Shown one piece after another: positions 15,088 through 59,727 of a stretch of DNA of 64,000 nucleotides (its first letter is position 1; each line of letters starts with the position of its first letter). The DNA lies in NCBI RefSeq assembly GCF_006345805.1, contig NC_043008.1:39060001-39124000 (forward strand), read 5' to 3'. The notes below the pieces were generated by a model. The model had not been told where the DNA came from, made no database searches, and saw only the letters and a program-made list of their open reading frames with translations. The position numbers and the translations under genes are program-made. The DNA comes from Octopus sinensis. Its lineage: Eukaryota.

Positions 15088-18000
15088 TTATTTGAATTTG
15101 TGTTGTGAGAGAGGGACTCCCAGGGATATATCAGGTAATTCTTTCATAAATGTGTCCTTACCCCACAGCCAGTACGTTGTCATTAATCCGCGACCTTTTA
15201 CTTGTCTCTGTCCTCTACTTTCTAAGATATAACCGCCTAATGTATCAAGAAGTGTTGCAGTAGTCTCGCTCACTTGAATGTGTAAGGCATAAGAACTAGA
15301 CTGCATTCTGGAAGCTGTGTTGACGGTGTCTCCGAATAGACAATATCTAGGCATTAGTTTCCCCACCACGCCACTTACTACCGGGCCGGAATGCATTCCC
15401 ACTCGTAACTGCAGCACGTCAGTTTCCATGGGATCAGCATGGAGTAGAGTAACATGTGACATCAGATCTAAAGCCATTGTTGCAATTTCTCCTGCATGGC
15501 GATCACCATTCTTTTCTGGAATACCACTAACTACCATGTAGGAATCGCTGATGGTTTCCACTTTGTAAACATCATAGCCGTCCAAAACTGAGTCAAATAT
15601 TTTATAAACTTCATTTAAAAAATCAACGATTTCCATTGGCTACTTTCTTTACATATTCGGCCAAAATTCACGATATCACTGAAGAATACCGTGGCATTTT
15701 CGAATAATTCCGGTATCACTTCACCAACTTGTTTCAGTTCACAAGCTACTTTCGGGGGCAACATCTGGCCCAATAGCTGCTCAGCTTTAGCTTTTTTTTC
15801 TTCTAGTTCTCTGGTTCTTTCTATCACGATTATTTCTAAATTATTGGAGTAAGTTTCCAAGAGGTGGATTAATTTATCTATAAGTTCTCCTTTTATGGGG
15901 TACATTTGATTTAGAATTATGCTAATATTATTAAAAGTCGGTCGTGACGATGCCTTCTCATTCCAAGACTCTTCAAGCATTTTTTTAAACAGCTTCTTAG
16001 ATAGCTTACTGTTTGGTAATAAATCATCACTTAAAATTGGTCTCGTAAAAATCATTTTACCTCCACCAATACTCTCCCATACACGTCGTATTTCTTTATT
16101 GTCCGGTGACTTTGAATCTTTAATGAGTTCTAAAATGCTTTTTTCACTTAAATGTTTCAGTTCATAATGGTATGGTTTTGCCTTCGTCACAATTTCACAC
16201 GCAATGATAGCAAATGAATAGACATCTCCTTCCGGTGTGCCCCATTTTACCCCGTCGAGATTTGTGCTTTCCCTCAGTAGTTCGGGTGCGGTCCAAAAAA
16301 GATCTTTTAAATCATACATTTCTTCAGACTCTGGGATTCTGTAGCTTCCATAACGAAGAAACGGTGCACCAAATCCTGACAGACGTACAGTCCAGCGCTT
16401 ATCAACCAAGCAGTTGGAAGATTTCAGACGTCCATGGCTTTTGATTTCAGATTTGTCATGCAAATATTCCATTCCGCAACATATATCTTTTAAAAATGAA
16501 AATCCAAATGCCCATCCGATCTCAAATGTTTCATTGGCAAGTACATCCGCTATACTCCCCTTGTCAGCAATTTCCATGAACAAACTGACGTTAGGATAAG
16601 TCAAACAGCATCCACCGTATTGGATCAGATTATAATGTCTAGTCTTAGTTAACTTGACCATGTCCGAAATAATCTTTTTATCATCAGGAAGAATTGTCTT
16701 ACTATTAATCTTTTTCACATACCATTCCTGATCGTCCCATCGATAAACCGCAACTTGTTTGTTAATAATACCTGTGTACGTCTCTGCCGTAACTATGCGC
16801 TCAGGTTTAGTTACTGTATCCCAGTCAATCAGCCATTCCTGAAAACTCACTCTTTTCGTCTTTCGATCCAAAATTGTCAACATGAAATAAAAAAAACAAC
16901 ACAGAAGAGTCAATCCTACACAGAGTGGTATTATGATGCTCATAATATGAACGTCGCAATGCTTTCCAATGTATAATATAGTACTGCACACACATTCATG
17001 TGGTTTTTTGCATATACCAGCATGACATTTTTTGCAGATTGGTTGTTTACAAGTAACACCTTTATAGCCAGCATTACACACGCACGTACCGTCAACCTGG
17101 CACACACCATTTTTACATTGACATGAAATTGTGTGACAATACTTCCCTTCGAATCCTTCAAAGCATTCGCATTTGTTACCAGGACGACATATTCCTCGAT
17201 CGAAAACATTAATATTACTAGGGTCTTTTAATTTGTATCCACAGGCATGAACGCAATAATATGGTGGAACTATACTTTCTGTTCGCATAAAAAGGGTTGG
17301 TGGCCAATCTTCACCCTCTTTTGGCATCATTTTTTGTGTATTGAGACTAACCATCCCCGATAAAGATATGTATCGTCTAGTGTTATGTGCCTTACCGACA
17401 GGAAATGCTACCAGTGCCGCAGTTTTATTGTGAGGAAGTATTTCCGATTCGTAAGGTATTTCTAATTGAATACCGTCTTCCGATCTCTTAATACATTTTA
17501 CGTAAGTTATAACTTTAGATTTCGGCAAATATGGCCAACGTGGGATTGGGTTAACTTGGGCCAGATAACCGAAATAACCAATTCTATCACCGTATGCATT
17601 TAAAGATACTTTATCTGTTAGTCCATGTATAGTTGTCTTGCGCATGAGCCAATTAACTTTGTTACCTCTAAATGTTAGTCGTTTATTGAGAAGTATGGCT
17701 AACGCTTTAGCGTAAAGGTGCACGGCGTCATAACCCAATCCCATTAACGCTCCTATTTCAAAGGATCTATAACGAACTCTTCCACCTTTGTAAAGTACAC
17801 GGTCTTCTTTAAAATAATAATTAAGAACTCGTTTCCAACTATCTGTTTGGTAACCCGATACATTGTAGGTCGAATCAAAGAGGTAGGTTCCAGTAAAAGC
17901 TAATGTGCATTCTAACTTTTTGTTACAAACCGAATGGTTCTCAAATGGAAACTCTCGCGCGTACTTTTTCATTAAAACCCATTGGAATCCATGCAGAGAA

Positions 18001-20131
18001 GAAAGGTTCATAAGATAGGCTTCTCGAAAGACGATTGGCTGTATATGGAATGGAGCAAACAGAAAGATTACTTTCAAGTTAGTTTTTTTCACTTCCCCCA
18101 AATCATTACTGAGCATACCATCTTGCAAATACTTGGGTTTAAGATTTTTCATTTCTTTCAAAATGATGTGATTTCGTATATTGATGTTGTATTTGATAGC
18201 CGCAGTATAGAATGACTTACTAAGTTCAATAGTCGAATATCGAATGATTACAATATCAGTCCAAAATCTATCTTTGGCTGATTGAAACACGGAATTATAA
18301 AATTCCTCTTCGGTCCAAGTTAAACTGTTATAAAATAGGTATGAATTTTTATCGGAGAATTCTCTGGAAAAGTCGATTGTCGAAATAAGTGGTATCATAA
18401 ACTTCGTTAAAAATGGGCTAAAAAGTTTAGCAACATTTCCTGGAACAGAACTTATAACCAAACTAATATTACTTAAAATATTTTTTAAACCCCCAAGTTT
18501 TCTATAGGTTGCAGGTTTTTCATTTGGAACATTGTACGACTTCAATAGGAAGTTTATACCGTTTTTTTTTAACTCTGGAGCAATAATACCATTGTTAACA
18601 TCATTGATAGCGAATCGGATAAAAGAATTGATATGTGAGTCAATTTCTTTTCCATCGCCACTAAATCGAAGGTCACCAAAATGTCCAATTGTAATGTTTC
18701 CTGTTATACGAAAAGCCGGAGTTATGATAGAAATAGCGTTCTCCTCAATTGCAGTTATTCTTAATTTGACGGAATTGACTACTTCACAAATAGATACCAA
18801 TAACTGGATTTTTCCATCTGACATTCCCACGGTGCTATGTTTTGAAAAACATATATTTTCTGGGATTGTATTAATAGATAGGCGTAATTTGGAGTTAGGG
18901 CCTGAATAGATCCGACGACCTGAAGTATCCAGTGCTAAAATACTCATGCCGTAAAGTAAAGGACAAGTGATAGGTACTTCTACAATTCCCCCATTATTTT
19001 TAAGTTTAGAATACATACTTTTTGAGAAGTTGTCCATAGCAATGGCACCTAACGCTACAACTGCTACTGTGAAATTCCTCGTGAAGACAACAGGTAGAAT
19101 CTTTTCCTCTTCCTCAGTTGTTAATCGTTGGAAAGTAATAAACTTTCTGTCACTGGACAACTGTCTTGCACGTTCGATGTCAAGGAAACATTCTGAGCAA
19201 GCAGGAATTCTGCTCCATGGGTCTCTTGCCATGGTTAAAGTAATATTTAGTTGCAAATTTTCTGTTACGTCTAAAATTCGAACTCCAGTAAATTTTGCCG
19301 TACCATAATTTGCTTGTTGACGCATTATTATATCTCGTGTTTTAAAATCAATTGTTACATTCTCTCCATCCATTCGAATTTTAGTGTAATCAATCATCAT
19401 TTCTCTCTCTGGGTCAGCATAGAAACGTTTATAATTGTAAGGAATTGTCATTTCCACAATTGCTACCGAATCAAGACCATTTATGAGAGTATTCCTTCTT
19501 CATCTCTTATTTCAACCTCAACATCAAAATCGTGATTAGCCAAAACTGTTACAGGTGGTTGTTTCGTTACAACTAACCGGTGTGCAGGTTTGGTTACAAA
19601 TATTGGGAAAGAGTCGACGTATATTTTATAATCTGGTATTTCGATCCTGAACATTCGCATGGATGGAGGTACAATGGTATGTTTATGGTAAATCCAATCA
19701 AATATGAGTTTTCCATTAAAAATTCGTGATTTCATTAGAATGGAAGAATGCGGTGTATGACAACGAGTTTTCGCAAGATGTCTGTTATATCGCTCCGGAT
19801 AATTCAACCACCACGCTGATTTCTGACACAGTTGGCCGCCACTGTCTGCCCAAGTATCTTTGTTATTAATCTCGCCAGATGGCGAAACAGCATAGCTGTC
19901 TATTGTAGCCGTCATATTGACTTCTCCCCCAGAAAAAGGTGTCCCGTTTGAATAAAAGGCAACGACAATGATCGGTTTGCTGATCATTTGATTGAGTGGC
20001 ACTGAATAGTATAACTTTGAAGGATCATCGGGTATAATTGCAGGAGGTTCGTGAAATTGTAGAAATGATAATTCCAATTGTCCTGTCACAAACATCCAAG
20101 TAGAGATAAGAATGAGGCATGTAATTGTCAT
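15088..20131 (-). CDS. Receptor guanylyl cyclase copy 1, intronless, split by two 1-bp deletions (near 19492 and 15640); assembly error or very young pseudogene
   Basis: ORFs 19481-20131, 15615-19457 and 15088-15636 are collinear with copy 2. Span is 5044 versus 5046 bp, with no other indel or internal stop seen. Motifs HGRLKSSNC, FSDIVNF, KVETISDSY, PRYCLFGDTVNTASRM. Confidence 0.85.
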
Positions 20132-20607
20132 AGTTTATCGGATATTTCATGAACAAAATGCGTTTGAATAATCATTTGTCGTTTAAAAGCATTGTAATTT
20201 TTCTATTTCAACATGAAAAACTAAATGCTAGCCAGAGCGCCTATGCAATTAAACAAAGAAATCTGAGAAAAATAAAATCTATCAACGTCTTTCTTAAACG
20301 CAACTTCATATGTTAAACACTCACTTTTGATCTGATAATAAGCGTTTATTTTTTTTTATTTTCTTCTTTCATAATTTGAATTCCATATGAAATTGTTTTA
20401 GAGTAGCGTCTCTGATAAAAGAAAAATTTAAGAAAGCATCTTCGTGAATATTTATCACACCTACATGCAGAAAATAGATGCACACATACGCACACGCATG
20501 ATTGCGTGTATGTGTGTGGATGTGTGTGCGAGCGTATGTATGTGTGTTCTCGCTATCTATTTATCTATCTATTTATTTATTTGTCTCTCTCTCTCTCTCT
20601 CCCTCCG

Positions 20608-20780: not shown

Positions 20781-20939
20781 CTTTATTACCCACAAGGGCC
20801 TAAACATAGAGGAGACAAACAAGAACAGACAAAGGGATTAAGTCCATTAGATCGACCCAGTGCGAAACTGGTACCTTATTTATCGACCCCGAAAGGATGA
20901 AAGGCAAAGTCGTTAATCGAAACATGAAACCACAAAGAG

Positions 20940-22660
20940 AATCACAACAACGCGAGGACGTGATGAGAGATTGACCAGAGAGGAAAGTGTTTGTCTCCAA
21001 TCCTTTCAGACACGTCCACCAGATGCATTCTTTCGCTATAGCCACAAGAATGATGAAAATAGCTCTTCCTTCCCGTTTGAAGGAAGGAGGCATGACAATA
21101 TTGACGATAGACTCAGCTGATAAACCGACTTGTCCCACACGTGACAGCAGTCCTTCGAGATAAGCCCACAAGTCGGCAATTGTTGGACACTGCACGAGTG
21201 CGTCCAGAACGATTTCGTCGCTCTTACCGCATCTCGAGCAGGTCGGCCCCGTGTTTTTCGAGTCGTGTCGGTAGAGCTTATCCCGAAAAGATAGCGCTTC
21301 TCGGTAGCACTGCCAGGCCAGGGATCTCTGGAAGTTGTCCATTGTCCTGGCCCGAAAGTCGTCCTGAACAGACGGGTCAGGTATTCCTCGTCGACGCCCA
21401 GGTTTGCTCCGAGCTCGTCGTCGTACCCCCCACCCCTTGACTAATCCCCTATAGAATGCTTTGGTTATGTTGAAGTCACTCAAAGTCGACCCGGGACGGC
21501 ATAGTTGCTTGAGAGCAACGCGACACTCGCGGTGCGATTCGCCCTTCCTCGGCCTCTTTTTGATCCACGACTGCAGTTCGGTCATGGAGACGAGCTGCGG
21601 GAAAGCGTGCCTCACAAACGGCGACCACACCTGTTCACCGTCGTCTACGTAGAGCCTGAGATGTCGCAGTCTCAGCGCGTGTCTGCGCATCATCAACCAC
21701 GGCATGCTCAGTCCTCCTTTTAACAGGTGTTGACAGCAAATGGATCGCCTGACCATCGCAACGCATCCTTTCCATAAGAAGCGGAAGAGAATGCGTTCTA
21801 GTTTGGTGATGGGAGGGTCGGGACAAGGTACGACGGTCAGGCGGTAGTTGATGACGGACACGATGTACGCGTTCGCCACCTCCACCCGACCTTTTAGGGA
21901 CAGTTTCCTCTCGGCCCATTGCCGGGCGAGAGTGACCACACTACTCGTTATCTCGTTCCAGTTCTTCTCCATTTGGAGGTCCGGACCAAGCCAGACCCCG
22001 AGCAACTCGACCGGACCGTCGATCCAGCGTCCCACGACGGAGGCGGTGGTGGATGGCATGGGCTTGCTTCTCCAGGTGCCGAGTCGCAAGCCCACTGACT
22101 TTTTCCGGTTGATTTTCACTCCTGTCACCGCTTCGTAGTCTTTCAGTGTCTCGCCGACCAGCTTGATGTGCTCGTGGCTAGACACTATTACGGTGACGTC
22201 GTCCGCGCATGCAGACACGTTCGTCCCGCATTCCAATTCTCGCGGGATGCCCCTCAGAGTTGCCAGCTTCAGCAATAATGGCTCGAGAGTCAATACTTAT
22301 AGAAGCGACGAGAGGGGGCATCCCTGACGGACCGAACGTGCAATGTCAAAAGGTTTCGATAGATGTCCATTTACGCGAATTACCGAACGGATACCGCTGT
22401 ACAAAGCGGCTATCCAGCCGCGGAAGGCGGTACCGAAACCAACCGCTCTGAGGACAGCCTCCAAGTATCGATGGTCTACCCTATCAAAAGATTTCGATTG
22501 ATCCAAAATGATCAAAGCCCTACCCATTCCAGGTTCTTTAACTACCCTGTCTATGATGTAGTGCTTCAGATGGAGGTTGTCATGGATGCTCCGGCCCGGT
22601 ACGGCGCATGCTTGCACCTAGTCGACCAGTTTCTTGATGACAAGCGCCAACCTCTTGAGA
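20940..22660 (-). mobile_element. 5'-truncated L1/Tx1-clade LINE (RT and C-terminal Cys region)
   Basis: LDQSKSFDRVDHRYL, SVRQGCPLSSLL, ACADDVTV, LGVWLG, TCSRCG; homologous to 28320-30157. Confidence 0.88.
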
Positions 22661-25948: not shown

Positions 25949-26244
25949 CTTTCCTATTTTTTAATTATTAGAAATCTTCCGCTGAAGAGGAAGCCGGTTT
26001 CCAACAAAAATGCAAGGCTCCATATTTGGAGCTTGCAGAAATTCTTGCATATTTTTACCTTGCACTCACAGATAGCACGTTGTAATTTTCGAATTAGCCG
26101 GTTGATTACTCTTTCTGAAAATTCCCAGTTTATCCAGATTCGCCTTTCAGTATGTACCAATAAAACTTAATGCTCCAGTTTTTATTGGTTTCCATAAAAA
26201 TTCATAGTCTAGACATAGAAGCTGGAGGATTCGAAGCAGTTATC
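25949..26244 (-). mobile_element. RLE-type (R4/Dong-like) LINE 3' fragment
   Basis: Reverse complement is homologous to about 34780-35090 (LQLLYPDY...LGFSE...LIR..ICKNF); (TACA)n at both ends. Confidence 0.7.
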
Positions 26245-26475
26245 TATGTATGTATGTGTGTATGTATTTATGTATGATATATGTATGTATGCATTTATTT
26301 ATTTATTTATGTATACATGTATGCATGTATTTTGTCATTATTCAGTTTATTTCATGATTTTTTGCCAATAAAGAAAGAACCGGTTTCTAACCTAGATTAA
26401 AGTCTCCTTCATTGGAAATTCAACATCAAGAACAGGGTATTTTTTATGTATGTATGTATGCATGTATGCATGTAA

Positions 26476-26506
<31 letters not shown>

Positions 26507-26519
26507 TGTATGTATGTAC

Positions 26520-28300
26520 TACTAGTGAAGGAGAAGTGGAGGGCAGCATGGAAAGATTTGACAAAAGAGAGGTAGGAGTCTAGATGTTCGTGAGAGAGTG
26601 AGGTTGCATCGATACAGTCGTCAACATAACGGCCTTGTATTTTGGGAGTGGGACCAGTGAAACTTGAGAATATTTGGGTCTCAACATAGCCAACCAACAG
26701 GTTCGCATAGTTGGGGCCCATTCTCGTTCCCATTGCCACTCCCAAGACGGTGCTGGTAGAAATCGCCCGGACCGAGAAGCAGTTGAGTGAGAGGACAAGT
26801 TCGGCCAGACGAACGAGTGTGGAGGTGTCGGGTTGGGGGTTGGGTCGCACGTCAAGGAAGTATTTCAGTGCACGCAGCCCCTTGTGGTAAGGGATCACCG
26901 TGTAAATGCTCTGGATATCGAGAGTTTAGAGGGGCAAGGAGGGAAGGAGAAAGAGTTGAACAGACGAAGAGCATGATTTGTGTCATGGAGAGAAGCCAAT
27001 AGGGGGTTGGGGTAAGATAATTGGAGATAAGCTCGGTGGGGCAGGTACAGGCAGAGACGAGGGGGCGGGCAGGGTATTTAGGTTTGGGGATTTGGGGGAG
27101 GAAGTAAATGGTGGGTGTGCGGAGGTTCGGACAATGAGGTTGGAGGCGGTGTGGGGGAGACGGGAGGAGGAGATGCGGTCATGGATAGGGGAGGACACCG
27201 TCTGTTGGTAGCTGGGCGTGAGGTCAGAGGGCAGAAGGCAGCAGAAGGAGGTGTCTTGAAGTTAGAGGAGAGCTTCGGCTTATAGAGGTCCGCTCGCCAT
27301 ACCACCACGGCTGCACCCTTGTCGGCCGGTTTTATAACGATGTCAGTGCGGCGTCGGAGAGAACGAAGAGCGGAGAGTTCGGCTGGGGAGATTCTGAGAC
27401 AACAAGGGACGCCTGGAGAAGTTAAACCGGTTCACCGCGTGCTGGCAGGCACCCGCAAAAATCTCAACTGCTTGGAACTGGCCAGGAGCAGACATCCACT
27501 GGATGGTCGGCCGCCTAGGTCAGTTAAGTACTCCTCCTCGTTAGATGTGGGTGGAGTGTCGCGGAAAAGCGAACACAACATAACGCTGCGCACAAAGCTG
27601 TGGATATAAGCACGAGTCTGAAATTCATTGCAGGATGAATTGTGGCGGATGAAACGCAGACCCCTACTGAGGATGGAGCGCTCCGCCTCAGAAAGAAGAT
27701 ATGGCGGAATGGTAACAACAGACTGAAGTAGAAGCGGTGGATGGAATAGAAGTAGGAGGGGTTGTAGGGCTGGTGGAAGGCTTGGAGGGAGGGCATGGGG
27801 ATGTGTGAGAGAAATTTGGGGGGTTGAGGATGGGGGAACGTGTCATGGAGGGAGAAGGGTAGTGGAGGAGGTGGGGTAGTGGAATCTGTTGAGATGGAAT
27901 GAAGGAGAGAGTGGAGTTTACGATGTTTGGTGTTGGCAAGATATTGATGAAAGAGATGAGTTAAATGAATTATATATGGCAACGTTTTGTGAGAATGGGA
28001 GGGGGACAGAGAGGAGGAAAAGATGGAAAAAGCCGGAGGGAGAAGGCGGTCGATGGTATGTATTTTAGAGAGATTGGAGCAAATGGTGGCACGCATAAGG
28101 CAGTAGGATGTAGTACGGAGTATGGGAAGGATGGTTGAAGCAGAATGGAGAGTAGGGCGAAATGGAAGCGGAAACCTTTTGGGATGAGGCGGTGATGTAA
28201 GCAACGACTGAGAAATGAAACGTGGCTAAAGAAACAAGTTTTTTTGAAAATATGTAAAGAAAGTTTAATGAAAGGCTGAATCTTCACCTTCACCGCTACA
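26520..28300 (-). mobile_element. Penelope-like retroelement fragment
   Basis: RT motifs GVAMGTRMGPNYANL and GRYVDD; VVWRADLY upstream; frameshifted. Confidence 0.8.
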
Positions 28301-28319
28301 CCTTAGATATGGTTGGGAA

Positions 28320-33913: not shown

Positions 33914-34318
33914 TACCTTTCCGTCGGCTACGACGACCAGCGTACCAGTTGATACGATAGATGGAACAGCCTACCCGTGAAATTAAAGTACAAGTGACGG
34001 AGCATTCCACAGGCACGTGTAACCGGAATTTAATTCTGAGGAAGATCTAGTGTGACATAGAAAGTGGAAAGGCTGCTCCCATTTGAATTACAGGTACATT
34101 TCATTTTTGTTTGGTGAGAGGAGCAACGTGAATTAAAGTATCTTGCTAAAGGTCACAACGCGCTGCCGGGGTTCGAACTCATAACTTTCTGATCGTAACC
34201 GCTAAGCCACGCAACTTCACAATATACATACATACAACATACATACATACATACATGCATGCACACACATATATACATATACACATACATACATACATGC
34301 ACAAAAATATATACATAT

Positions 34319-34349
<31 letters not shown>

Positions 34350-34422
34350 TACATACGTACATACATACATACATACATACATACATACATACATACATAC
34401 ATACATACATACATACATACAC

Positions 34423-35090: not shown

Positions 35091-35233
35091 AACACACACA
35101 TACACACACACATACATACATACATGCATACATACATACATACATACATACATACATACATACATACATACATACATAAACACATACTACAATATGTATG
35201 GTGTTTTATAGATAAATTTATGCACTGGTGGCT

Positions 35234-38200
35234 TTATTTGAATTTGTGTTGTGAGAGAGGGACTCCCAGGGATATATCAGGGAATTCTTTCATAAATGTG
35301 TCCTTACCCCACAACCAGTACGTTGTCATTAATCCGCGACCTCTTACTTCTCTTTCCCCTCTACATTCTAATTTATAACCGCCTAAAGAATCAAGAATTG
35401 CTGCAGTATTCTCGCTCACTTGAATGTGTAAGGCATAAGAACTAGACTGCATTCTGGAAGCTGTGTTGACGGTGTCTCCGAATAGACAAAATCTAGGCAA
35501 TAGTTTCCCCACCACGCCACTTACTACCGGGCCGGAATGCATTCCAATTCGTAATTGTAGCACATTACTTTCCGTGTTGGGAACATGGAGTAGAGTAACA
35601 TATGACATCAGATCTAAAGCCATTGTTGCAATTTCTCCTGCATGGCGATCACCATTCTTTTCTGGAATACCACTAACTACCATGTAGGAATCGCTGATGG
35701 ATTCCACTTTATAAACATCATAGCCGTCCACCACTGAGTCAAATAATTTATAAACTTCATTTAAAAAATCAACGATTTCCATTGGTTTACTTTCTTTACA
35801 TATTCGGCCAAAATTCACGATATCACTGAAGAATACCGTGGCATTTTCGAATAATTCCGGTATCACTTCACCAACTTGTTTCAGTTCACAAGCTACTTTC
35901 GGGGGCAACATCTGGCCCAATAGCTGCTCAGCTTTAGCTTTTTTTTCTTCTAGTTCTCTGGTTCTTTCTATTACAACCATTTCTAAATTATTGGAATAAG
36001 TTTCCAAGAGGTGGATTAATTTATCTATAAGTTCTCCTTTTATGGGGTACATTTGATTTAGAATGATGCTAAGCTTATTAAAAGTCGGTCGTGAAGATTC
36101 CTTCTCATTCCAAGACTCTTCGAGCATTTTTTTAAACAGCTTCTTAGATAGATTACTGTTTGGTAATAAATCTTCACTTAAAATTGGTCTTGTAAAAATC
36201 ATTTTACCTCCACCAATACTCTCCCATACACGTCGTATTTCTTTATTGGCCCGTGAATGTGAATCTTTAATGAGATCTAAAATGCTTTTTTCACTTAAAT
36301 GTTTCAGTTCGTAATGGTATGGTTTTACCTTCGTCACAATTTCACACGCAATGATAGCAAATGAATAGACATCTCCTTGCGGTGTGCCCGACTTTACTCC
36401 ATCGAGATTTGTGTTATCCCTCAGTAGTTCGGGTGCGGTCCAAAAAAGATCTTTTAAATCAGACATTTCTTCAGACTCTGGGATTCTGTAGCTGCCATAA
36501 CGAAGAGACGGTGCACCAAATCCTGACAGACGTACAGTCCAGCGCTTATCAACCAAGCAGTTGGAAGATTTCAGACGTCCATGGCTTTTGATTTCAGATT
36601 TGTCATGCAAATATTCCATTCCGCAACATATATCTTTTAAAAATGAAAATCCAAATTCCCATCCGATCTCAAATGTTTCATTGGCAAGTACATCCGCTAT
36701 ACTCCCCTTGTCAGCAATTTCCATGAACAAACTGACGTTAGGATAAGTCAAACAGCATCCACCGTATCGAATCAGATTATAATGTCTAGTTTTAGTTAAC
36801 TTGACCATGTCTGAAATAATCTTTTTATCATCAGGAGGAATTGTCTTACTATTAATCTTTTTCACATACCAGTTCTCATTGTCCCATCTATAAGCTGCAA
36901 CCGTTTTGTTAATTATTCCCTTGGATTGTCCTACCATACCTAATTTTTCAGGTACAGTAACGTTGTCCCAATCAATCATCCAGTCTTGATAGATTATACT
37001 TTTCGTCTTCGAGCTAGTTATTCCTGCCACGACATAAAAGATACCAATGAGAATAAGTGCTGCAAATAATATTGGAACAATGATGGATGAAATATGAATA
37101 GCACAATTTTCACCGAAATATACTATAGTAGTGCATTCACATACACCTGGTTTTACACATACACCAAAATTACAATCCTCACAAATTGCTGCACCACAAG
37201 AGGGACCTGTATAACCAGGATTACATATGCAAGAACCTTCAATAGTGCAAAGGCCGTGTAAACAATGGCACTGAACAGTGTGACAATGCTTCCCTTCGAA
37301 TCCTTCAAAGCATTCGCATTTGTCATCTGGACGACATATTCCTCCATCAAAAACATTAATATTACCGGGGTCTTTTAACTTTTCACCACACGCATGAACG
37401 CAATAATATGGTGGAACTATACTTTCTGTCCGAATAAAAATGGTTGGCGGCCAATCTTCACCCTCTTTTGGCATCATTTTTTGTGTATTGAGACTAACCA
37501 TCCCCGATAAAGATATGTATTGTCTAGTGTTATGTACCTTACCGACAGGAAATGCTACCAGTGCCGCAGTTTTATTGTGAGGAAGTATTTTCGATTCGTA
37601 AGGTATTTCTAATTGAATACCGTCTTCCGATCTCTTAATACACTTTACGTAAGTTATAATTTTAGATTTCGGCAAATATGGCCAACGTGGGATTGGGTTA
37701 ACTTGGGCCAGATAACCGAAATAACCAATTCTATCACCGTATGCATTTAAAGATACTTTATCTGTTAGTCCATGTATAGTTATCTTGCGCATGAGCCAAT
37801 TAACCTTCGCACCGTTAAGTGTTAGTTGTTTATTGAGAAGTATGGCTAACGCTTTAGCGTAAAGGTGCACGGCGTCATAACCCAATCCCATTAACGCTCC
37901 TATTTCAAAGGATCTATAACGAACTCTTCCACCTTTGTAAAGTACACGGTCTTCTTTAAAATAATAATTAAGAACTCGTTTCCAACTATCTGTTTGGTAA
38001 CCCGATACATTGTAGGTCGAATCAAAGAGGTAGGTTCCAGTAAAAGCTAATGTGCATTCTAATTTTTTGTTACAAACCGAATGGTTCTCAAATGGAAACT
38101 CTCGCGCGTATTTTCTCATTAAAATCCATTGGAATCCATGCAGAGAAGAAAGGTTCATAAGATAGGCTTCTCGAAAGACGATTGGCTGTATATGGAATGG

Positions 38201-40279
38201 AGCAAACAGAAAGATTACTTTCAAGTTAGTTCTTTTCACTGCTTCCAACGATGATTTCAGCTTCCTGTCATACAAGTTCTTCGGTTTTAAATCTTTTACT
38301 GCCCCAAAGACAAATTCATTGCGTAAGTTAATTTTGTATTTGATAGCCACAGAATAGAATAAACCAGTTAAATTAATATCGTGATATCGAAGGATTACAA
38401 CGTCAGTCCAAAACCTATCTTTAGCACATTGAAACACTGAATTATAGAACGCCTCCTCTGACCAACTTATACTATTATACAATGGGTATATATCTTTATC
38501 GATGTATTCTCTGGTAGAATCGATCGTCGAAATATAAGGTATCCTAAACTTCACTATGAACGGACTAAAAACATTAGCAACATTTCCTGGAATGGAACTT
38601 ATAACCAAATGAATATTAGTTGAAATAGTTTCCAAATCCCCAAGTTTTCTATAGGTTGCAGATTTTTCGTTTGGAATATTATACGACTTCAAATATAATT
38701 TCAATCCTTTCTTTCTTAATTCTGGGACAATAATACCATTATTAACATCATTGATTGCGAATCGTATAAAAGAATTGATATGTGAGTCAATTTCCTTTCC
38801 ATCACCACTAAATCGAAGGTCACCAAAATGTCCAATTGTAATGTTTCCTATTATACGAAAAGCTGGAGTTCTGTAAGTAACAGTAGGTGGACCATCGTAA
38901 GTTATTATCAGTTTGACGGAGTTGACTACCTCACATATAGATACAAATACGAGAGCTTTTCCTTCTGACATATTCCTAGTGTAGTCCTTTGACAAACATA
39001 TATCTTTTGGGATTGTATTAATATTTAGGCGTGATGTGGAGTGAGGACCTGAATAGATCCGACGTTCTTTCATATCCATTGCAAAAATACTTAAGCCGTT
39101 AAGTAGAGGACAACTAATAGGCACCTCTACAACATTTTCATTAGTTTTAAGTTTAGAATACATACTTTTTGATGAGGTGTCCATATCAACTTTATTCAGA
39201 ATTTGATAATGTACTGAGAAATTCTTCGTGAAGACAACAGGTAATATCTTTTCCTCTTCCTCAGTTGTTAATCGTTGGAAAGTAATAAACTTTCTGTCAC
39301 TGGACAACTGTCTTGCACGTTCGATGTCAAGGAAACATTCTGAGCAAGCAGGAATTCTGCTCCATGGGTCTCTTGCCATGGTTAAAGTAATATTTAGTTG
39401 CAAATTTTCTGTAACGTCTAAAATTCGAACTCCAGTAAATTTTGCCTTACCATAATTTGCTTGTTGACGCATTATTATATCTCGTGTTTTAAAATCAATT
39501 ATTACATCCTCTCCATCCATTCGAATTTTAGTGTAATCAATCATCATTTCTCTCTCTGGGTCAGCATAGAAACGTTTATAATTGTAAGGAATTGTCATTT
39601 CCACAATTGCTACCGAATCAAGACCATTTATGAGAGTATTTCCTTCTTCATCTCTTATTTCAACCTCAACATCAAAATCGTGATTAGCCATTACTGTTAC
39701 AGGTGGTGGTTTCGTTACAACTAACCGGTGTGCAGGTTTGGTTACAAATATTGGAAAAGAGTCGACGTATATTTTATAATCTGGTATTTCGATCCTGAAC
39801 ATTCGCATGGATGGAGGTACAATGGTATGTTTATGGTAAATCCAATCAAATATGAGTTTTCCATTAAAAATTCGTGATTTCATTAGAATGGAAGAATGCG
39901 GTGTATGACAACGAGTTTTCGCAAGATGTCTGTTATATCGCTCCGGATAATTCAACCACCATGCTGATTTCTGACACAGTTGGCCGCCACTGTCTGCCCA
40001 AGTATCTTTGTTATTAATCTCGCCAGATGGCGAAACAGCATAGCTGTCTATTGTAGCCGTCGTATTGACTTCTCCCTCAGAAAAAGGTGTCCCGTTTGAA
40101 TAAACGGCAACGACAATGATCGGTTTGCTGATCATTTGATTGAGTGGCACTGAATAGTATAACTTTGAAGGATCATCGGGTATAATTGCGGGAGGTTCGT
40201 GAAATTGTAGAAATGATAATTCCAATTGTCCTGTCACAAACATCCAAGTAGAGATAAGAATGAGGCATGCAATTGTCAT
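35234..40279 (-). CDS. Receptor guanylyl cyclase copy 2, intronless, 1681 aa: signal peptide, 3 putative Ig-like repeats, Venus-flytrap domain, 3 EGF-like repeats, TM, kinase-homology domain, guanylate cyclase
   Basis: Uninterrupted ORF. Flytrap motifs FAINDVNN, RIPYIST, GYDAVHLYAKAL, GLTDKVSLNAYGDR. EGF Cys spacing at aa 960-1059; hydrophobic aa 1062-1087. HGRLKSSNC; helix LETYSNNLE...RTREL; cyclase FSDIVNF, KVESISDSY, PRFCLFGDTVNTASRM. Confidence 0.96.
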   Translation of the reverse strand: MTIACLILISTWMFVTGQLELSFLQFHEPPAIIPDDPSKLYYSVPLNQMISKPIIVVAVYSNGTPFSEGEVNTTATIDSYAVSPSGEINNKDTWADSGGQLCQKSAWWLNYPERYNRHLAKTRCHTPHSSILMKSRIFNGKLIFDWIYHKHTIVPPSMRMFRIEIPDYKIYVDSFPIFVTKPAHRLVVTKPPPVTVMANHDFDVEVEIRDEEGNTLINGLDSVAIVEMTIPYNYKRFYADPEREMMIDYTKIRMDGEDVIIDFKTRDIIMRQQANYGKAKFTGVRILDVTENLQLNITLTMARDPWSRIPACSECFLDIERARQLSSDRKFITFQRLTTEEEEKILPVVFTKNFSVHYQILNKVDMDTSSKSMYSKLKTNENVVEVPISCPLLNGLSIFAMDMKERRIYSGPHSTSRLNINTIPKDICLSKDYTRNMSEGKALVFVSICEVVNSVKLIITYDGPPTVTYRTPAFRIIGNITIGHFGDLRFSGDGKEIDSHINSFIRFAINDVNNGIIVPELRKKGLKLYLKSYNIPNEKSATYRKLGDLETISTNIHLVISSIPGNVANVFSPFIVKFRIPYISTIDSTREYIDKDIYPLYNSISWSEEAFYNSVFQCAKDRFWTDVVILRYHDINLTGLFYSVAIKYKINLRNEFVFGAVKDLKPKNLYDRKLKSSLEAVKRTNLKVIFLFAPFHIQPIVFREAYLMNLSSLHGFQWILMRKYAREFPFENHSVCNKKLECTLAFTGTYLFDSTYNVSGYQTDSWKRVLNYYFKEDRVLYKGGRVRYRSFEIGALMGLGYDAVHLYAKALAILLNKQLTLNGAKVNWLMRKITIHGLTDKVSLNAYGDRIGYFGYLAQVNPIPRWPYLPKSKIITYVKCIKRSEDGIQLEIPYESKILPHNKTAALVAFPVGKVHNTRQYISLSGMVSLNTQKMMPKEGEDWPPTIFIRTESIVPPYYCVHACGEKLKDPGNINVFDGGICRPDDKCECFEGFEGKHCHTVQCHCLHGLCTIEGSCICNPGYTGPSCGAAICEDCNFGVCVKPGVCECTTIVYFGENCAIHISSIIVPILFAALILIGIFYVVAGITSSKTKSIIYQDWMIDWDNVTVPEKLGMVGQSKGIINKTVAAYRWDNENWYVKKINSKTIPPDDKKIISDMVKLTKTRHYNLIRYGGCCLTYPNVSLFMEIADKGSIADVLANETFEIGWEFGFSFLKDICCGMEYLHDKSEIKSHGRLKSSNCLVDKRWTVRLSGFGAPSLRYGSYRIPESEEMSDLKDLFWTAPELLRDNTNLDGVKSGTPQGDVYSFAIIACEIVTKVKPYHYELKHLSEKSILDLIKDSHSRANKEIRRVWESIGGGKMIFTRPILSEDLLPNSNLSKKLFKKMLEESWNEKESSRPTFNKLSIILNQMYPIKGELIDKLIHLLETYSNNLEMVVIERTRELEEKKAKAEQLLGQMLPPKVACELKQVGEVIPELFENATVFFSDIVNFGRICKESKPMEIVDFLNEVYKLFDSVVDGYDVYKVESISDSYMVVSGIPEKNGDRHAGEIATMALDLMSYVTLLHVPNTESNVLQLRIGMHSGPVVSGVVGKLLPRFCLFGDTVNTASRMQSSSYALHIQVSENTAAILDSLGGYKLECRGEREVRGRGLMTTYWLWGKDTFMKEFPDISLGVPLSQHKFK

Positions 40280-42714: not shown

Positions 42715-42819
42715 TGTGTGTGTTTGTGTGTTTGTGTCTGTGTGTGTTTGTGTATGTGTGTTTGTGGGTGTATGCTTGTGTATGTGTGTGTGTATTTGTG
42801 TTTGTGTGTGTTTGCATGT

Positions 42820-42853
<34 letters not shown>

Positions 42854-42923
42854 TGTGTATGTGTGTGTGTATGTGGGCGTATGCTTGTGTATGTTTGTGT
42901 GTTTTTGTGTTTGTGTGTGTGTT

Positions 42924-42957
<34 letters not shown>

Positions 42958-43065
42958 TGTGTGTTTATGTATGTGTATGTGTATGTGTTTGTGTATGTGT
43001 GTTTCTGTGTGTGTGTCTTTGTCTATATATGTGTGTTTGTGTGTGTGTCTGTTTGTGTATGTGTG
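42715..43065. repeat. Compound (GT)n-rich microsatellite
   Basis: Direct inspection. Confidence 0.95.
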
Positions 43066-53950: not shown

Positions 53951-54343
53951 GTCTAAATTTGGGACTTCATAAGACTTGAAAATTTGAAAATATTAACAGA
54001 TTTACATGTATGATAGTTGTACTGGATTGTTTTGGCTTATAGAGTTAACCCACACTCCATTTTAACGTCATCAGATTTTCGTTGGCAGAGTGTATCTCGC
54101 GGAAAAAATTTTTTGCAAACATTTATGTGAGATCTGATTTGATGTCAATTAAAAAATTCGATTCGATGCCGGAAGAATTTCAGGCCGTGGATTACCAATA
54201 TCATCCATGTATGTTCACGACACTTTGGTGCATTGGATAAAATGATTATTTGTCGTTTTGTGCCCAGAGCATAAAAGTCTCCGTGGTAATGACATAATTA
54301 TCCTTTTATAGCATTGTTACATTTACACACATACAGACTCACA

Positions 54344-54379
<36 letters not shown>

Positions 54380-54663
54380 CATTAACACACACAGATACAC
54401 ACACGCACATGCACACACATAGATACACACATGCACAGGTATAGTAATACAGACACATACATGCAGTCATATACATACAGCTCGTACATGCAGCTATGGA
54501 CGTGGAGGGTTTTGAATTTATTTTCATTCATTTAATCGATTTGAAAAGACGCCGTTGTTGCTATTTACCAAAGAAGCGGCATTCTTTAAACGCCAACGGA
54601 AGATATATTCCTGCTATAAACGGAAATTGTAAAATAGCACAAGTCAAAGCTTCGAAAAGAAAT

Positions 54664-57600
54664 ATGAAAATTTTGCGTTTACTTTTTATATTATTCAATT
54701 TTTTGCCTTCAAATAATGGGAAATATATTATTAAGTTTAAAGAAGAGCATTTCCCCCCAAGTAGCATTCCTTCTAATCCATTAAATCTCTACTATTCTGT
54801 CCCACTAAATCAAACGATTAGCAAATCAATAATTGCCGTGTTACAATTTAAGAACGGGACTCTGTTTACACCAAAACCAACATCAAACATAACAGCAAAA
54901 GTGACATCACTGGATGTTAAAACAGCCGAAAACAGTTCCCATTCAGATACTTGGGCTGAGAGTGGAGGTAAATTGTGTCAGAAAACAGCATGGTGGCTGG
55001 GTTATCCGGAGAGATTAAATAGAGAATATGCGAAAACCCGGTGTGGGTCACCGAATTCTAAAGTTCAATTGAACATTGAAATATTTAAAGGAGAAATAAT
55101 AATTGACTGGATCTACCATGAACATACAATATTACCGCCTGGCCCACGAGTGCTGAGAATTGAGGTCCCCAAATATCACGCAAAAACTGATACTAATCCA
55201 ATACGCATTACAGTTCCTGCACATCATTTGAGAATTACCAAACAACCTCCAGCATCAGTAAAAGCGAACCATAATTTCGATGTTGAGGTCGAAATTCGGG
55301 ATAGCAGCAATAAACGAGTAGAAGATGGCCTTGATTCAGTGGCATTTGTTATATTAACAGTTCCGTATGACTATAAGAAATTCTATGCCGACAAAAAGAG
55401 AGAAATGATTTTAGCTTCGTCAGAAGTCATGCTGGACGCTGATGAATTTTTGCTACATCTCAACACACGAGATTTGTCTATTCGTAAACAAGCGGTGAAG
55501 GGTAAAGTTGTTTTCCGAACTATTCGAATTTTAGATGCAGTCCATAATTTTCAGTTAAATTTAACGATGACAATGGCACGTGATCCTTTTATTAGAATTC
55601 CATCTTGTCCGTCTTGCTATATCGATTTTGATCACTATCATATTTCAGATGATGGCAAATATTTTCTGTTCACTCGTGTGACAGGTGCGAAACAGGGGAA
55701 TATATTGCCTATGATTTTCACGTCTTTAATAAGCATCGAGGTTCAGCTTATATCGAAATTAGTTCTCGATGAAAAAGTGAAAGAAAGATGGAATAAAATT
55801 CGAGATCCCAAAACGAAAAGAATCCCTATATTACTAAGTTCCTTCATCCCTGGTGGATTTTCTCTTATTGCGTTGGATAGCAGTGATCATCGAATATATT
55901 CAGGGCCAGATTCTGATCGTTCATTATTTTTTCTAACAGATCCGGTTGATGTTTGTGTATCATCTGATAAATATGCTAAGTTAAAAAGAGGAAGAGCTAT
56001 TATATATATATCAATATGTGAGGTAATTGACAAAGTAAAGTTAACGATATACCCTCACGGTAAAAAACAAATTTCATATACCACACCAGAGTTTACTGTT
56101 CGAGGTAATGTTTCAATTGTCCACTTTGGAGATCTTCACTACAGTGGGTCTGGGGAAAACGTTGATTCTCACGTTAATACTTTCATTCAACTTGCTGTAA
56201 ATGACATCAACAATGGAATATTAGTTCCGTATTTGAAAAAGAAAGGCATGTGGTTCAGTGTAAAAAGCGTGGACACCAAGAACAATGTATCGATTGCATA
56301 CAAAAAATTAATGTATTTTACTTCAGAAATTAATTTGCTTCGTTATGATAGTATACGTTTAGTGATCAGTAGCGTGTCATTAGAGATCACTGAAGCCGTA
56401 TACCCATTGCTTCTGAAAGGACGTTTGCCATTTATTTCAATAGCTAACATTGGAGGTGATTTCTCCAGCATCCAAAGATACAAATATTTCAATAGGATTT
56501 GTTGGACGGAAGACTCTCTCATCAACTCAGTACTTCTCGCTACGAAAGAGCGGAAATGGTTTCAAATATTAATAATGCGTTACCACGACACTCACGTCAG
56601 CCCACTCTTTTACGTTTATATGAATAAATATGGAATCAAATTGATTGCAGATATTGTCCTTCCGGTTCTAAAGAATATAGATGAAAAAAGTATGTTTGCT
56701 AAGCATTTCACGGCAGAAATGTTAGATACTGCCGCTTCAGGTTGTAAGATAATATTTTTATTTGCGCCTAAGTTTATTCAACCTTATGTATTCCATGATG
56801 CATATTTGACTGGCATCTCTGCGTTACATGGTTTTCAATGGGTTTTATTTGGTGAATATGCCAGGCAATTCCCATTTGATGATGAGGGAGTATGCAATGG
56901 TACAGTGAAATGCACTCATGCATTTGCAGGTACAAATTTGTTTAGTGAACAATATAATATAAGCGGCTATAGTTCATCTGACTGGTTTCGAATATTCGGT
57001 AATTGGTTTGCAGCCGACAAAACTATATACAAAGGCGGAAGCGTAAGCTACAGACCTAACTATATTGGTGCAAGAATGGGGCTTGGATACGATGCTGTGC
57101 ATCTTTATGCAGCCATGCTGGCGCAAATCATCCGCCATCAAACGACAGCGACTGGAGAACAACAAGTTGCTGAATTACGAAAAGTTAAAATTCATGGTTT
57201 GACTTCTTATCTGCAACTTGATAGACATGGGAACCGTATTGGTTACTTCGGATCTTTAGCTCATATAAATCCTCGTTCAAATCGGACAGGTTCAGGTGAA
57301 GAAAGAGTCACAGAATTTATAAGGTGCTTCCAAAAAATCAACAACACTGCCCAACTAGAGATCCCATATTCTGCAAAAGGAGATTACCAAAGATTTGACA
57401 TTGAAGCTCCACTCACACTACCACATTCTACTCGATATAACTTACGCCGATATTGGTCTTATTCTGGCATGATTGATATAATCACACAAAGATTGATTAG
57501 AAATCCCCGAGAAAGTTGGCCTCCAGTTAAGATAATGAGGACTGAGAAGGTCGTACCACCTTTCTTTTGTAAAAAGCCGTGCGGGAGAAAACTGGTAAGC

Positions 57601-59727
57601 CCCGAGGATGTAACTATTTTCGATACTGGTACGTGTATTTCAAAAGACAAATGCAAATGCAAAGATGGGTACCAAGGTGCAAAATGTCATATTGTGGAGT
57701 GTGGCTGTGACAATGGTCATTGCATAGAACCAAGAGAATGCATATGTAAAGAGGGTTATGTTGGCCCCTACTGCGAAAAGGCAAATTGCACCAAATGCAA
57801 ATATGGGACATGTTCCAAACCGTTTGAGTGTCGTTGTCACACATGGATTTACACAGGGAAATACTGTGATGTGCATGTCGGATACATCATATTAACTATT
57901 GCAGCTATTTTAATATCAAGCTTCTTCGTGTATTTCATTATTACAAAATTAATAGAACACAGGCAAAAACGAGCAGCTCTCGCTAATACTGACTGGATTG
58001 TCGATTGGTCAACTGTTGAAATATATGAGACAAGCCATGTCTCATTTCCTTATAACAGCAGATGTGCATCCATGATTCAGAGATACAGATGGAAAGGACA
58101 AGAATGGTATGTAAAATTCATTAACAGTAGTACAATAGATAGCAAAAATGAAGCTCTTATTCTCGAAATGGTTAGCTTGGTTAAACTTAGACATGAGAAC
58201 CTTATTCAATATGGTGGTGCTTGTCTGGTGAAACCCAATGTCAGTCTGTTTGTCGAATTCCTCGATAAGGGAAGTCTAAAAGATATTTTACAAAATGAAG
58301 CAGTTGATCTTGGATGGGAATTCCGGTTCTCCTTTCTGAAAGACATATGTCGTGGTATGGAATTTATTCACAACAAAACAGATATCAAGTCCCACGGTCG
58401 TCTGAAATCTTCAAACTGTTTATTAAACAATCGGTGGACAGTACGCCTCACTGGTTTTGGGGCAAATATTATTCGTTTTGGGGAGAAGAGGATTACGAAA
58501 TCAGTTCACAGCAAGAAAGAGCTATTCTGGACAGCTCCTGAATTGTTAAAAAATGTCTCAGATTTAGATGGAATCAAATCTGGTACACAGCCTGGTGATG
58601 TTTATTCATTCGCAATAGTCACAAGTGAAATTATTACTAGAGCGCCCCCTTATAAATACGAACTCTATTATTTATCAGTAAAAGAAATTATAGGTTTAAT
58701 AACATATGAATCTAGCAAGGCGATACGGCGAATTTGGGAAGATATCGGTGGAAAGGCCATGCTTTACACAAGACCAATTATAAAAGAAGAACTTTTCCCG
58801 ACAAATACAACCACTCATGAGTTATTTGCCAAAATGATTGCACAATGTTGGCAGGATGAACCTTTAGCGAGGCCTGTGTTCGGTACAATTCATCAAATGC
58901 TTACAGAAATACATCCAGGGAAAGGTGAGTTTAAAGATAATTTAATTGATCGGTTGGAGACGTATTCTAGTAGTTTAGAAGTTGTCGTCATTCAAAGAAC
59001 AAAAGAACTTAAAAAGAGCAAGGATAAAGCAGAAAGGCTCCTTGGCGAAATGCTTCCAAGGAAAGTAGCGAACGACATAAGAGAAGGAAACAAAATTTAT
59101 CCAGAGTATTTTGAATGTGTCAGTGTATTCTTTAGCGATGTCACCAATTTCTCCAATATTTGCAACGAGAGTAAAGCATTCGAGGTTGTGGACTTTTTGA
59201 ATGAGATTTATAATGCATTCGACAAAGTTCTCGATGATTATGATGTTTATAAAGTAGAAACTATCAGTGACTCATATATGGTGGTGAGTGGTCTCCCAGA
59301 GAAGAATGAGAATCGCCATGCTGGAGAAATTGCAACAATGGCTTTAGATCTGATGTCAACGGTGACGGTGTTTGAAATACCACATATGCCAAAATCTACT
59401 TTACAATTACGAATTGGAATACATTCAGGACCAGTGGTTAGCGGTGTGGTTGGTAAACTTATGCCTCGGTATTTTTTGTTCGGAGACACTGTGAACACAG
59501 CTTCGAGGATGGAGTCCAGTTGTTATGCTCTGCGAATTCAAGTGAGTGAGACTACAGCTGGCATTCTTGAAGAATTAGGGGGATATGCCTTGGAATCAAG
59601 AGGCCAGATAAATGTGAAAGGACGAGGGATGATGACAACCTACTGGCTTTGGGGCAAAGACACCTTCAAAAAAATATTGCCGGATCAATCTCTCGCTTTG
59701 AGAATTTCTAAACACAAAGTTAAGTGA
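54664..59727 (+). CDS. Receptor guanylyl cyclase copy 3, intronless, about 1687 aa, same architecture as copy 2
   Basis: The ORF is open from 54496, but ATG54664 gives a signal-peptide-like MKILRLLFILFNFLPSNNG collinear with the paralogs. Same Ig-like, flytrap, EGF, TM, HGRLKSSNC and FGDTVNTASRMES motifs. Confidence 0.95.
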   Translation: MKILRLLFILFNFLPSNNGKYIIKFKEEHFPPSSIPSNPLNLYYSVPLNQTISKSIIAVLQFKNGTLFTPKPTSNITAKVTSLDVKTAENSSHSDTWAESGGKLCQKTAWWLGYPERLNREYAKTRCGSPNSKVQLNIEIFKGEIIIDWIYHEHTILPPGPRVLRIEVPKYHAKTDTNPIRITVPAHHLRITKQPPASVKANHNFDVEVEIRDSSNKRVEDGLDSVAFVILTVPYDYKKFYADKKREMILASSEVMLDADEFLLHLNTRDLSIRKQAVKGKVVFRTIRILDAVHNFQLNLTMTMARDPFIRIPSCPSCYIDFDHYHISDDGKYFLFTRVTGAKQGNILPMIFTSLISIEVQLISKLVLDEKVKERWNKIRDPKTKRIPILLSSFIPGGFSLIALDSSDHRIYSGPDSDRSLFFLTDPVDVCVSSDKYAKLKRGRAIIYISICEVIDKVKLTIYPHGKKQISYTTPEFTVRGNVSIVHFGDLHYSGSGENVDSHVNTFIQLAVNDINNGILVPYLKKKGMWFSVKSVDTKNNVSIAYKKLMYFTSEINLLRYDSIRLVISSVSLEITEAVYPLLLKGRLPFISIANIGGDFSSIQRYKYFNRICWTEDSLINSVLLATKERKWFQILIMRYHDTHVSPLFYVYMNKYGIKLIADIVLPVLKNIDEKSMFAKHFTAEMLDTAASGCKIIFLFAPKFIQPYVFHDAYLTGISALHGFQWVLFGEYARQFPFDDEGVCNGTVKCTHAFAGTNLFSEQYNISGYSSSDWFRIFGNWFAADKTIYKGGSVSYRPNYIGARMGLGYDAVHLYAAMLAQIIRHQTTATGEQQVAELRKVKIHGLTSYLQLDRHGNRIGYFGSLAHINPRSNRTGSGEERVTEFIRCFQKINNTAQLEIPYSAKGDYQRFDIEAPLTLPHSTRYNLRRYWSYSGMIDIITQRLIRNPRESWPPVKIMRTEKVVPPFFCKKPCGRKLVSPEDVTIFDTGTCISKDKCKCKDGYQGAKCHIVECGCDNGHCIEPRECICKEGYVGPYCEKANCTKCKYGTCSKPFECRCHTWIYTGKYCDVHVGYIILTIAAILISSFFVYFIITKLIEHRQKRAALANTDWIVDWSTVEIYETSHVSFPYNSRCASMIQRYRWKGQEWYVKFINSSTIDSKNEALILEMVSLVKLRHENLIQYGGACLVKPNVSLFVEFLDKGSLKDILQNEAVDLGWEFRFSFLKDICRGMEFIHNKTDIKSHGRLKSSNCLLNNRWTVRLTGFGANIIRFGEKRITKSVHSKKELFWTAPELLKNVSDLDGIKSGTQPGDVYSFAIVTSEIITRAPPYKYELYYLSVKEIIGLITYESSKAIRRIWEDIGGKAMLYTRPIIKEELFPTNTTTHELFAKMIAQCWQDEPLARPVFGTIHQMLTEIHPGKGEFKDNLIDRLETYSSSLEVVVIQRTKELKKSKDKAERLLGEMLPRKVANDIREGNKIYPEYFECVSVFFSDVTNFSNICNESKAFEVVDFLNEIYNAFDKVLDDYDVYKVETISDSYMVVSGLPEKNENRHAGEIATMALDLMSTVTVFEIPHMPKSTLQLRIGIHSGPVVSGVVGKLMPRYFLFGDTVNTASRMESSCYALRIQVSETTAGILEELGGYALESRGQINVKGRGMMTTYWLWGKDTFKKILPDQSLALRISKHKVK

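Follow-up and report, generated by a model that had tools for sequence, protein, structure and literature searches.

The stretch of Octopus sinensis DNA analysed here (contig NC_043008.1, positions 39,060,001 to 39,124,000 of assembly GCF_006345805.1; 64,000 nucleotides, hereafter the window) carries three copies of a gene for a giant receptor guanylyl cyclase. Copy 2 (35234..40279, minus strand), which serves as the reference, is an intact single-exon gene of 1,681 amino acids (aa), as judged from its open reading frame (ORF) and Pfam domains. Copy 3 (54664..59727, plus strand), identified from its ORF and homologs, lies head-to-head with copy 2 and is an intact paralog of 1,687 aa with 48% identity to it. 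The copy 3 ORF spans 54496-59727 (plus strand; 1,743 codons), and the homologs and the signal peptide place the start at the methionine at 54664 (MKILRLLFIL...); the upstream extension from 54496 to 54664 found no homolog support in the alignment with relatives. Copy 1 (15088..20131, minus strand) is a paralog of copy 2 in tandem and in the same orientation, with a broken frame, as the ORFs and the alignment show. Open frames of 5 kb would not be expected by chance in this DNA, whose GC content is 35-38% where these frames lie. Furthermore, a gene called on CM016870.1 (GCA_006345805.1, at about 39.1 Mb) matches copy 2 exactly over aa 401-1681. A protein-versus-DNA search of the window found no other cyclase fragments.

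Copy 1 consists of three abutting ORF pieces of 216, 1,280 and 182 aa, and differs in length from copy 2 by two 1-bp deletions only, at about 19494 and 15642, with no further stops. Its ortholog in O. vulgaris (P0160; 97-100% identity) has a frame open across both deletion sites, which makes copy 1 either an O. sinensis pseudogene of very recent date or the product of assembly indel errors. The duplication unit that contains it (14969..20495, minus strand) is homologous to 35120-40626 (89.8% over 5.5 kb by self-BLAST) and comprises the gene together with about 350 bp of upstream and about 115 bp of downstream sequence, with microsatellites at both bounds. The original prediction had placed three paralogs of about 1,680 aa at these positions; this holds for copies 2 and 3, which are intact, and needs correction for copy 1, which the two deletions break.

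The encoded proteins combine an unusual ectodomain with the intracellular half of a receptor guanylyl cyclase, in the order signal peptide, about 460 aa of Ig-like sequence, Venus-flytrap, stalk, three EGF-like repeats, one transmembrane (TM) helix, pseudokinase, putative coiled coil and class III cyclase. In copy 2, Pfam matches comprise ANF_receptor at aa 533-851 (E 7e-14), EGF families at 980-1061, kinase families at 1128-1403 (Pkinase E 8e-23) and Guanylate_cyc at 1475-1656 (PF00211, E 6e-58), and in copy 3 the corresponding ANF_receptor match (PF01094) has an E value of 4e-12. The N terminus is hydrophobic (MTIACLILISTWMFVTG), in agreement with the type I topology of a receptor guanylyl cyclase. 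Beyond the N terminus, a single strongly hydrophobic segment is present in every copy, at about aa 1059-1098; copy 2 has one further, marginal stretch at aa 442-460. The TM helix is placed at aa 1063-1087 (37019..37093, minus strand; Kyte-Doolittle maximum 2.99), and since this is the single strong hydrophobic segment, the ectodomain comes to about 1,060 aa, the size originally predicted.

The N-terminal extension (aa 19-478; 38846..40225, minus strand) has no Pfam match and no PDB sequence match by profile even at E<=10, and is conserved across eight cephalopod sequences, with invariant cysteines C102/C124, C312/C315 and C428/C449. AlphaFold2, run on this region with the same number of cephalopod sequences, gave a model with a mean predicted local distance difference test score (pLDDT) of 76 and a predicted template-modelling score of 0.72, containing beta-sandwich domains at roughly aa 20-180, 185-305 and 385-480 and a short alpha/beta linker between the last two. 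Foldseek matched this model to SbsC S-layer protein, complement MG domains, titin and ICAM arrays (E 5e-8 to 1e-5); template-modelling scores were low, as is expected for multi-domain chains. As far as the models go, three Ig-like domains are a fair description at the level of the fold, in line with the roughly 460 extra Ig-like residues that had been proposed to precede the flytrap. The first half of Ig-like domain 2 resembles a repeat of about 114 aa that occurs in 7-23 copies in giant bacterial surface proteins, a likeness that supports a generic adhesion-type Ig fold. This bacterial repeat, found for example in the Bdellovibrionales protein MCB0421093.1, in P0015 and P0016 and in many further profile matches, is apparently outside Pfam coverage.

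The remainder of the ectodomain is better matched by known families. The Venus-flytrap (periplasmic-binding-protein type I/ANF_receptor; aa 479-860, 37700..38845, minus strand) is supported by Pfam PF01094, profile matches and Foldseek. It is followed by a stalk (aa 861-955; 37415..37699, minus strand) with conserved alignment columns, in which beta strands are predicted at low confidence (pLDDT below 50), and by three EGF-like repeats (aa 956-1062; 37094..37414, minus strand) that match Pfam EGF_TEN, EGF_Teneurin and EGF_2. The alignment of this last region has 18 invariant cysteines, three times six, in agreement with the three EGF-like repeats of the original prediction. Compared with the PDB, an ectodomain profile matches the EGF repeats of WIF-1, Delta/Jagged and teneurin (E 2e-20 to 1e-8) and the flytraps of class C G-protein-coupled receptors (GPCRs), namely T1R2a (6e-8), GABA-B2 and mGluR5; NPR ectodomains are absent among its best 60 PDB matches. 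The AlphaFold2 model of the whole ectodomain is poor (pLDDT 55) and was used solely to confirm the flytrap fold, for which Foldseek matches the CaSR, mGluR, GABA-B and GC-A ectodomains at about 1e-13. Pfam and structure prediction of copy 2, the check proposed at the outset, have together matched flytrap, EGF, kinase and cyclase and modelled the Ig-like fold.

On the intracellular side, the best PDB sequence match is NPR-A, over copy 2 aa 1137-1659 (E 2e-109), followed by GC-C. The kinase-homology domain (aa 1128-1403; 36071..36898, minus strand; Pfam Pkinase/PK_Tyr_Ser-Thr) carries the motif HGRLKSSN, invariant in the alignment, at the site of HRDLKxxN, the motif of active kinases; it lacks the catalytic Asp and is a pseudokinase, as in other receptor cyclases. 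The putative coiled-coil or signalling helix, presumably the dimerisation region (aa 1411-1470; 35870..36049, minus strand), lies inside the stretch aligned to NPR-A; its residues 1438-1466 weakly resemble the C-terminal end of HNOBA (E 0.002). The class III nucleotide cyclase catalytic domain follows at aa 1475-1656 (35312..35857, minus strand).

The active site of a guanylyl cyclase is defined by seven residues: two metal-binding Asp, a guanine-selecting Glu and Cys, then Arg, Asn and Arg. Copy 2 has the complete set (D1486, E1526, D1530, R1577, C1598, N1605 and R1609), as do six of the seven other aligned cephalopod sequences, the exception being copy 3. There, Phe occupies the position of the guanine-specificity Cys (window 59400-59460, motif PRYFLFGDTV). 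The same Phe is present in the O. vulgaris ortholog, which shows the substitution to be real; the related copy 4 and P0006 retain Cys. Around the second metal-binding Asp, where the usual cyclase motif is KVETIGDAYM, the cephalopod clade has KVE(S/T)ISDSYM throughout (e.g., copy 2 aa 1526-1533), and an older Argonauta paralog, P0012, retains IGDAY. One relative, P0011 (1,678 aa), combines the complete domain layout with cyclase motifs that are degenerate (TSDVVDF, ISDFHM and VLGKTIDIALKM), and is probably a pseudo-cyclase.

Compared with known systems, the octopus proteins are closest to NPR-A (GC-A/NPR1) and the sea-urchin speract/resact receptors, with which they have in common the single TM helix, flytrap, HGxLKSSN pseudokinase, a putative coiled coil and a class III cyclase predicted to be homodimeric. 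However, the ectodomain of those receptors is essentially the flytrap alone, about 440-450 aa, whereas the octopus proteins have about 1,060 aa outside the membrane, over twice as much, adding some 460 aa of Ig-like sequence before the flytrap and a stalk and three EGF repeats after it, and their genes are intronless. To our knowledge, all known receptor guanylyl cyclases have a bare flytrap ectodomain of this smaller size, and the octopus copies depart from that flytrap-only plan. The class C GPCRs (mGluR, CaSR, T1R) likewise place a dimeric-type flytrap on a rigid, disulfide-rich stalk, but the stalk is their cysteine-rich domain, and it leads to seven TM helices and a G-protein output instead of three EGF repeats, one TM helix and a cyclase; indeed, the octopus copies have no 7tm_3 Pfam match. 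Tie/Tek-type receptors, which are enzyme-linked, cross the membrane once and dimerise, likewise pair Ig domains with three EGF repeats in the ectodomain. That likeness extends neither to the flytrap, which Tie/Tek-type receptors lack, nor to the output, which is a tyrosine kinase in place of the cyclase. No paper found in our full-text literature searches describes the architecture, in agreement with the view that no receptor cyclase of this layout had been characterised; database entries carry automatically assigned names ('speract receptor-like', 'atrial natriuretic peptide receptor 1-like').

The layout is older than the octopods. An exhaustive search of 1.84 billion representative proteins with a profile of the N-terminal region gave 218 matches at E<=0.001; the profile was built from cephalopod sequences only, and more distant members may therefore have escaped it. 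Among the matches listed, those that cover much of the profile in one stretch belong to O. bimaculoides, O. vulgaris, Argonauta hians and other animals. In the bivalve Sinanodonta woodiana, KAL3862181.1 contains Ig-like domains 2-3, flytrap, EGF and pseudokinase and is a partial model that ends within the pseudokinase, and in the centipede Strigamia maritima, T1JDE2 contains the same domains and the cyclase. Both have the domain order of the octopus proteins from Ig-like domain 2 through flytrap, EGF and TM helix to pseudokinase, at 28-29% identity to copy 2 over the full-length alignment. Ig-like domain 1 is not seen in either model, both of which are fragmentary, and fragments of Ig-like domains 1-2 occur in the gastropod Gigantopelta and the bivalve Tegillarca. 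The Sinanodonta and Strigamia members show that the layout is not a cephalopod invention. Together, these sequences define an old, rare, uncharacterised protostome subfamily that seems to have been sparsely retained. Intact full-length relatives come from Argonauta, O. vulgaris, O. bimaculoides and a sister clade of cephalopod-like sequences. Word-index homolog searches returned only cephalopod sequences, even with the bivalve and centipede queries, and one of them, at a cut-off of 1e-100, was too strict to list ordinary receptor cyclases.

Within cephalopods the genes appear to have long been intronless. The distant relative P0008, from a genomic contig of 144 kb, is one unbroken ORF with no second copy within +/-10 kb, so that the intronless state probably predates the octopod expansion. 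Outside cephalopods, fragments end at domain borders, and the Strigamia model includes apparent intron read-through. From the absence of introns alone, we infer a retrocopy origin in the cephalopod stem. In a neighbour-joining tree with the centipede as outgroup and 100% bootstrap at key nodes, copies 1 and 2 group with the two Argonauta genes P0004 and P0005, and copy 3 groups with O. vulgaris copy 4 and P0006, which pair with each other. Further branches are the sister clade of cephalopod-like sequences, the older Argonauta paralog P0012, the bivalve and the centipede. By tree position only, P0007-P0011 are probable decapodiforms.

Octopods have at least four paralogs, tandemly expanded, in agreement with the lineage expansion that had been proposed. 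The fourth, found in O. vulgaris, has 78% identity to copy 3 and is fused with copy 3 in one gene model. O. vulgaris also carries at least three repeats of the copy-2 unit and spacer, some of them partial, and the copy number thus differs between the sister species, or between their assemblies. At the O. vulgaris locus (OX597825.1, 28.56-28.60 Mb; our locus L006), neighbouring cyclases are fused in the annotation into models of 1,866, 2,241, 2,485 and 3,707 aa, and partial copy-2 units with internal deletions are present. Lineage-specific tandem expansions proposed to serve sensing are known likewise from the nematode GCY and the vertebrate GC-D/GC-G cyclases; those have ectodomains of ordinary size and demonstrated expression in sensory neurons, whereas the octopus expansion is small and known here from genes.

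Every domain, the N-terminal extension included, is under purifying selection. Between copy 3 and P0006, an octopod gene of the copy-4 type, the ratio of nonsynonymous to synonymous divergence (dN/dS, omega) is 0.18-0.52, below 1 in all domains, lowest in the cyclase (0.18), intermediate in the flytrap (0.38) and highest in the third Ig-like domain (0.52); between copies 2 and 3 it is 0.07-0.6. Copies 1 and 2 differ from each other in a patchwork. Their dS is near zero over aa 1-350, 700-950, 1150-1300 and 1450-1500, and rises to 0.2-1.3 over aa 350-700 and 1000-1150, where omega is mostly 0.2-0.8 and dS climbs along with dN. Where the two copies are similar, substitutions are shared between the paralogs of one species, which are closer to each other than the orthologs are. 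In the divergent stretches for which the O. bimaculoides sequences are informative, about aa 490-700 and 980-1120, each copy is nearer its O. bimaculoides ortholog than its neighbour; at aa 561-700, for example, copy 1 has 91% identity to P0003 of O. bimaculoides and 60-69% to copy 2. Over aa 351-490, identity is low to a similar degree in every comparison.

Copies 1 and 2 are therefore a gene-conversion mosaic, an instance of concerted evolution, in which two paralog-specific cassettes stand out: the third Ig-like domain with the first part of the flytrap, and EGF2-3 with the TM and juxtamembrane segments. The spared cassettes mark where the paralogs are kept different, without showing diversifying selection. 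Positive selection was considered and rejected: omega exceeds 1 in just three 50-codon windows, two in homogenised parts and one in a divergent cassette, and these contain too few sites to be meaningful. The description of the family as 'diversifying' is not upheld, given dN/dS of 0.18-0.52 in every domain and differences between copies 1 and 2 that reflect the conversion mosaic.

The remainder of the window consists of microsatellites, reverse-transcriptase fragments and one G-rich block. The block (26000-30000) lies between copies 1 and 2, has a GC content of 0.47-0.49 and strong GC skew, contains ORFs without a Pfam match, and is amplified along with the copy-2 unit in O. vulgaris. Weak matches to reverse transcriptase, resembling long interspersed nuclear elements, lie at 20800-22293 (minus strand), 62939-63955 (minus strand) and 32344-33305, the last being an inverted copy of 62919-63998 at 69% identity. 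Long microsatellites, (TA)n, (TG)n and (ATAC)n, occur at 12887-13365, 61613-62251, 42715-43065 and 34224-34421, and some of these bound duplicated gene units.

We consider it probable that the proteins are single-pass, dimeric, ligand-regulated receptor guanylyl cyclases of an old protostome subfamily, presumably with enzymatic activity. An extracellular ligand would bind the flytrap, probably along with the adjacent third Ig-like domain. The Ig and EGF content favours a protein or a surface-bound molecule as this ligand, which would be more likely than a small hormone. The resulting change in the ectodomain dimer would travel through the disulfide-rich EGF stalk, much as through the cysteine-rich domain of class C GPCRs, and, by way of the TM helix, reach the pseudokinase and coiled coil; the two cyclase domains would thereby become aligned and make cyclic GMP (cGMP). 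The cephalopod gene would have arisen as an old retrocopy. In octopods it has been duplicated in tandem, and gene conversion homogenises most of copies 1 and 2 but spares the two cassettes. These cassettes are likely determinants of ligand specificity and of pairing specificity.

Several points weigh against this reading. Copy 1 has frameshifts in this assembly. With the guanine-specificity Cys missing, copy 3 may differ in activity or specificity; the ISDSYM motif, found throughout the clade, stands in place of the canonical IGDAYM. The whole-ectodomain model has low confidence (pLDDT 55), and the arrangement of the domains in it is tentative. Transcript-sized Logan contigs are ambiguous and could derive from genomic or RNA reads alike; exact-match searches of public assemblies with copies 2 and 3 gave no match, and the run accessions behind these contigs were not found in the literature. 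As to retroposition, neither a poly(A) remnant nor a target-site duplication was found at the gene ends.

Could the genes be non-functional retrocopies or pseudogenes, or an artefact of uncollapsed haplotypes or mis-assembled repeats? Their lack of introns, the two frameshifts in copy 1 and the O. vulgaris assembly, with its partial, internally deleted copy-2 units and fused models, would fit such an origin. This is nevertheless highly improbable, since copies 2 and 3 are 5-kb ORFs without any stop, omega is well below 1 in all domains (0.18-0.52), the catalytic residues are retained, and a separate ortholog of every paralog type is present in both O. bimaculoides and O. vulgaris; moreover, within the cassettes the protein sequences of copy 1 and copy 2 diverge by as much as 60%, far above haplotype divergence. 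It is also quite improbable that the proteins act mainly in adhesion or as scaffolds with a vestigial cyclase. An ectodomain rich in Ig-like and EGF modules does recall adhesion molecules, and the Cys-to-Phe change in copy 3 and the degenerate motifs of P0011 point the same way. Yet the cyclase is the most constrained domain in the comparison of copy 3 with P0006, and copies 1 and 2, like most relatives, retain all the metal-binding, specificity and transition-state residues.

A third alternative concerns the role of the genes more than their nature: they may form a chemosensory, chemotactile or gamete-recognition array, a repertoire for external or conspecific cues comparable to the nematode GCYs, vertebrate GC-D or the sea-urchin sperm receptor. 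Intronless tandem genes whose copy number differs between O. sinensis and O. vulgaris would suit such a repertoire, as would paralog-specific cassettes in the presumed ligand-binding parts, where omega is also highest (third Ig-like domain and flytrap). However, there are only about four paralog types rather than tens, omega stays below 1 everywhere, P0008, from outside the named octopods, is single copy within the flanks that were covered, and our literature searches yielded no link to sensing, so that we regard this role as possible but tentative. More speculative still is a combined picture, in which an ancient protostome cGMP-coupled system for sensing contact or macromolecules was re-deployed and expanded in octopods (e.g., for chemotactile use or gamete/self recognition), with the cassettes encoding specificity and conversion keeping the signalling core uniform.

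Overall, the observation behind the original prediction is confirmed, with the caveat on copy 1, and its interpretation is partly supported. The genes belong to a genuine but uncharacterised subfamily of receptor cyclases whose ectodomain is unusual; the subfamily is older and wider than proposed and modestly expanded in octopods. Receptor guanylyl cyclases are a small and well-studied class, and a conserved subfamily that adds three Ig-like domains and a three-EGF stalk to the flytrap would widen the range of ligands that drive cGMP synthesis, possibly to proteins, matrix or cell surfaces. Its natural combination of a flytrap, a rigid stalk and a single TM helix would allow comparison with class C GPCRs. 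Furthermore, the mosaic of copies 1 and 2 illustrates clearly how gene conversion can leave specificity cassettes untouched. For cephalopods, the subfamily adds an intronless, tandemly expanding and copy-number-variable family of orphan receptors to the candidates for lineage-specific sensing.

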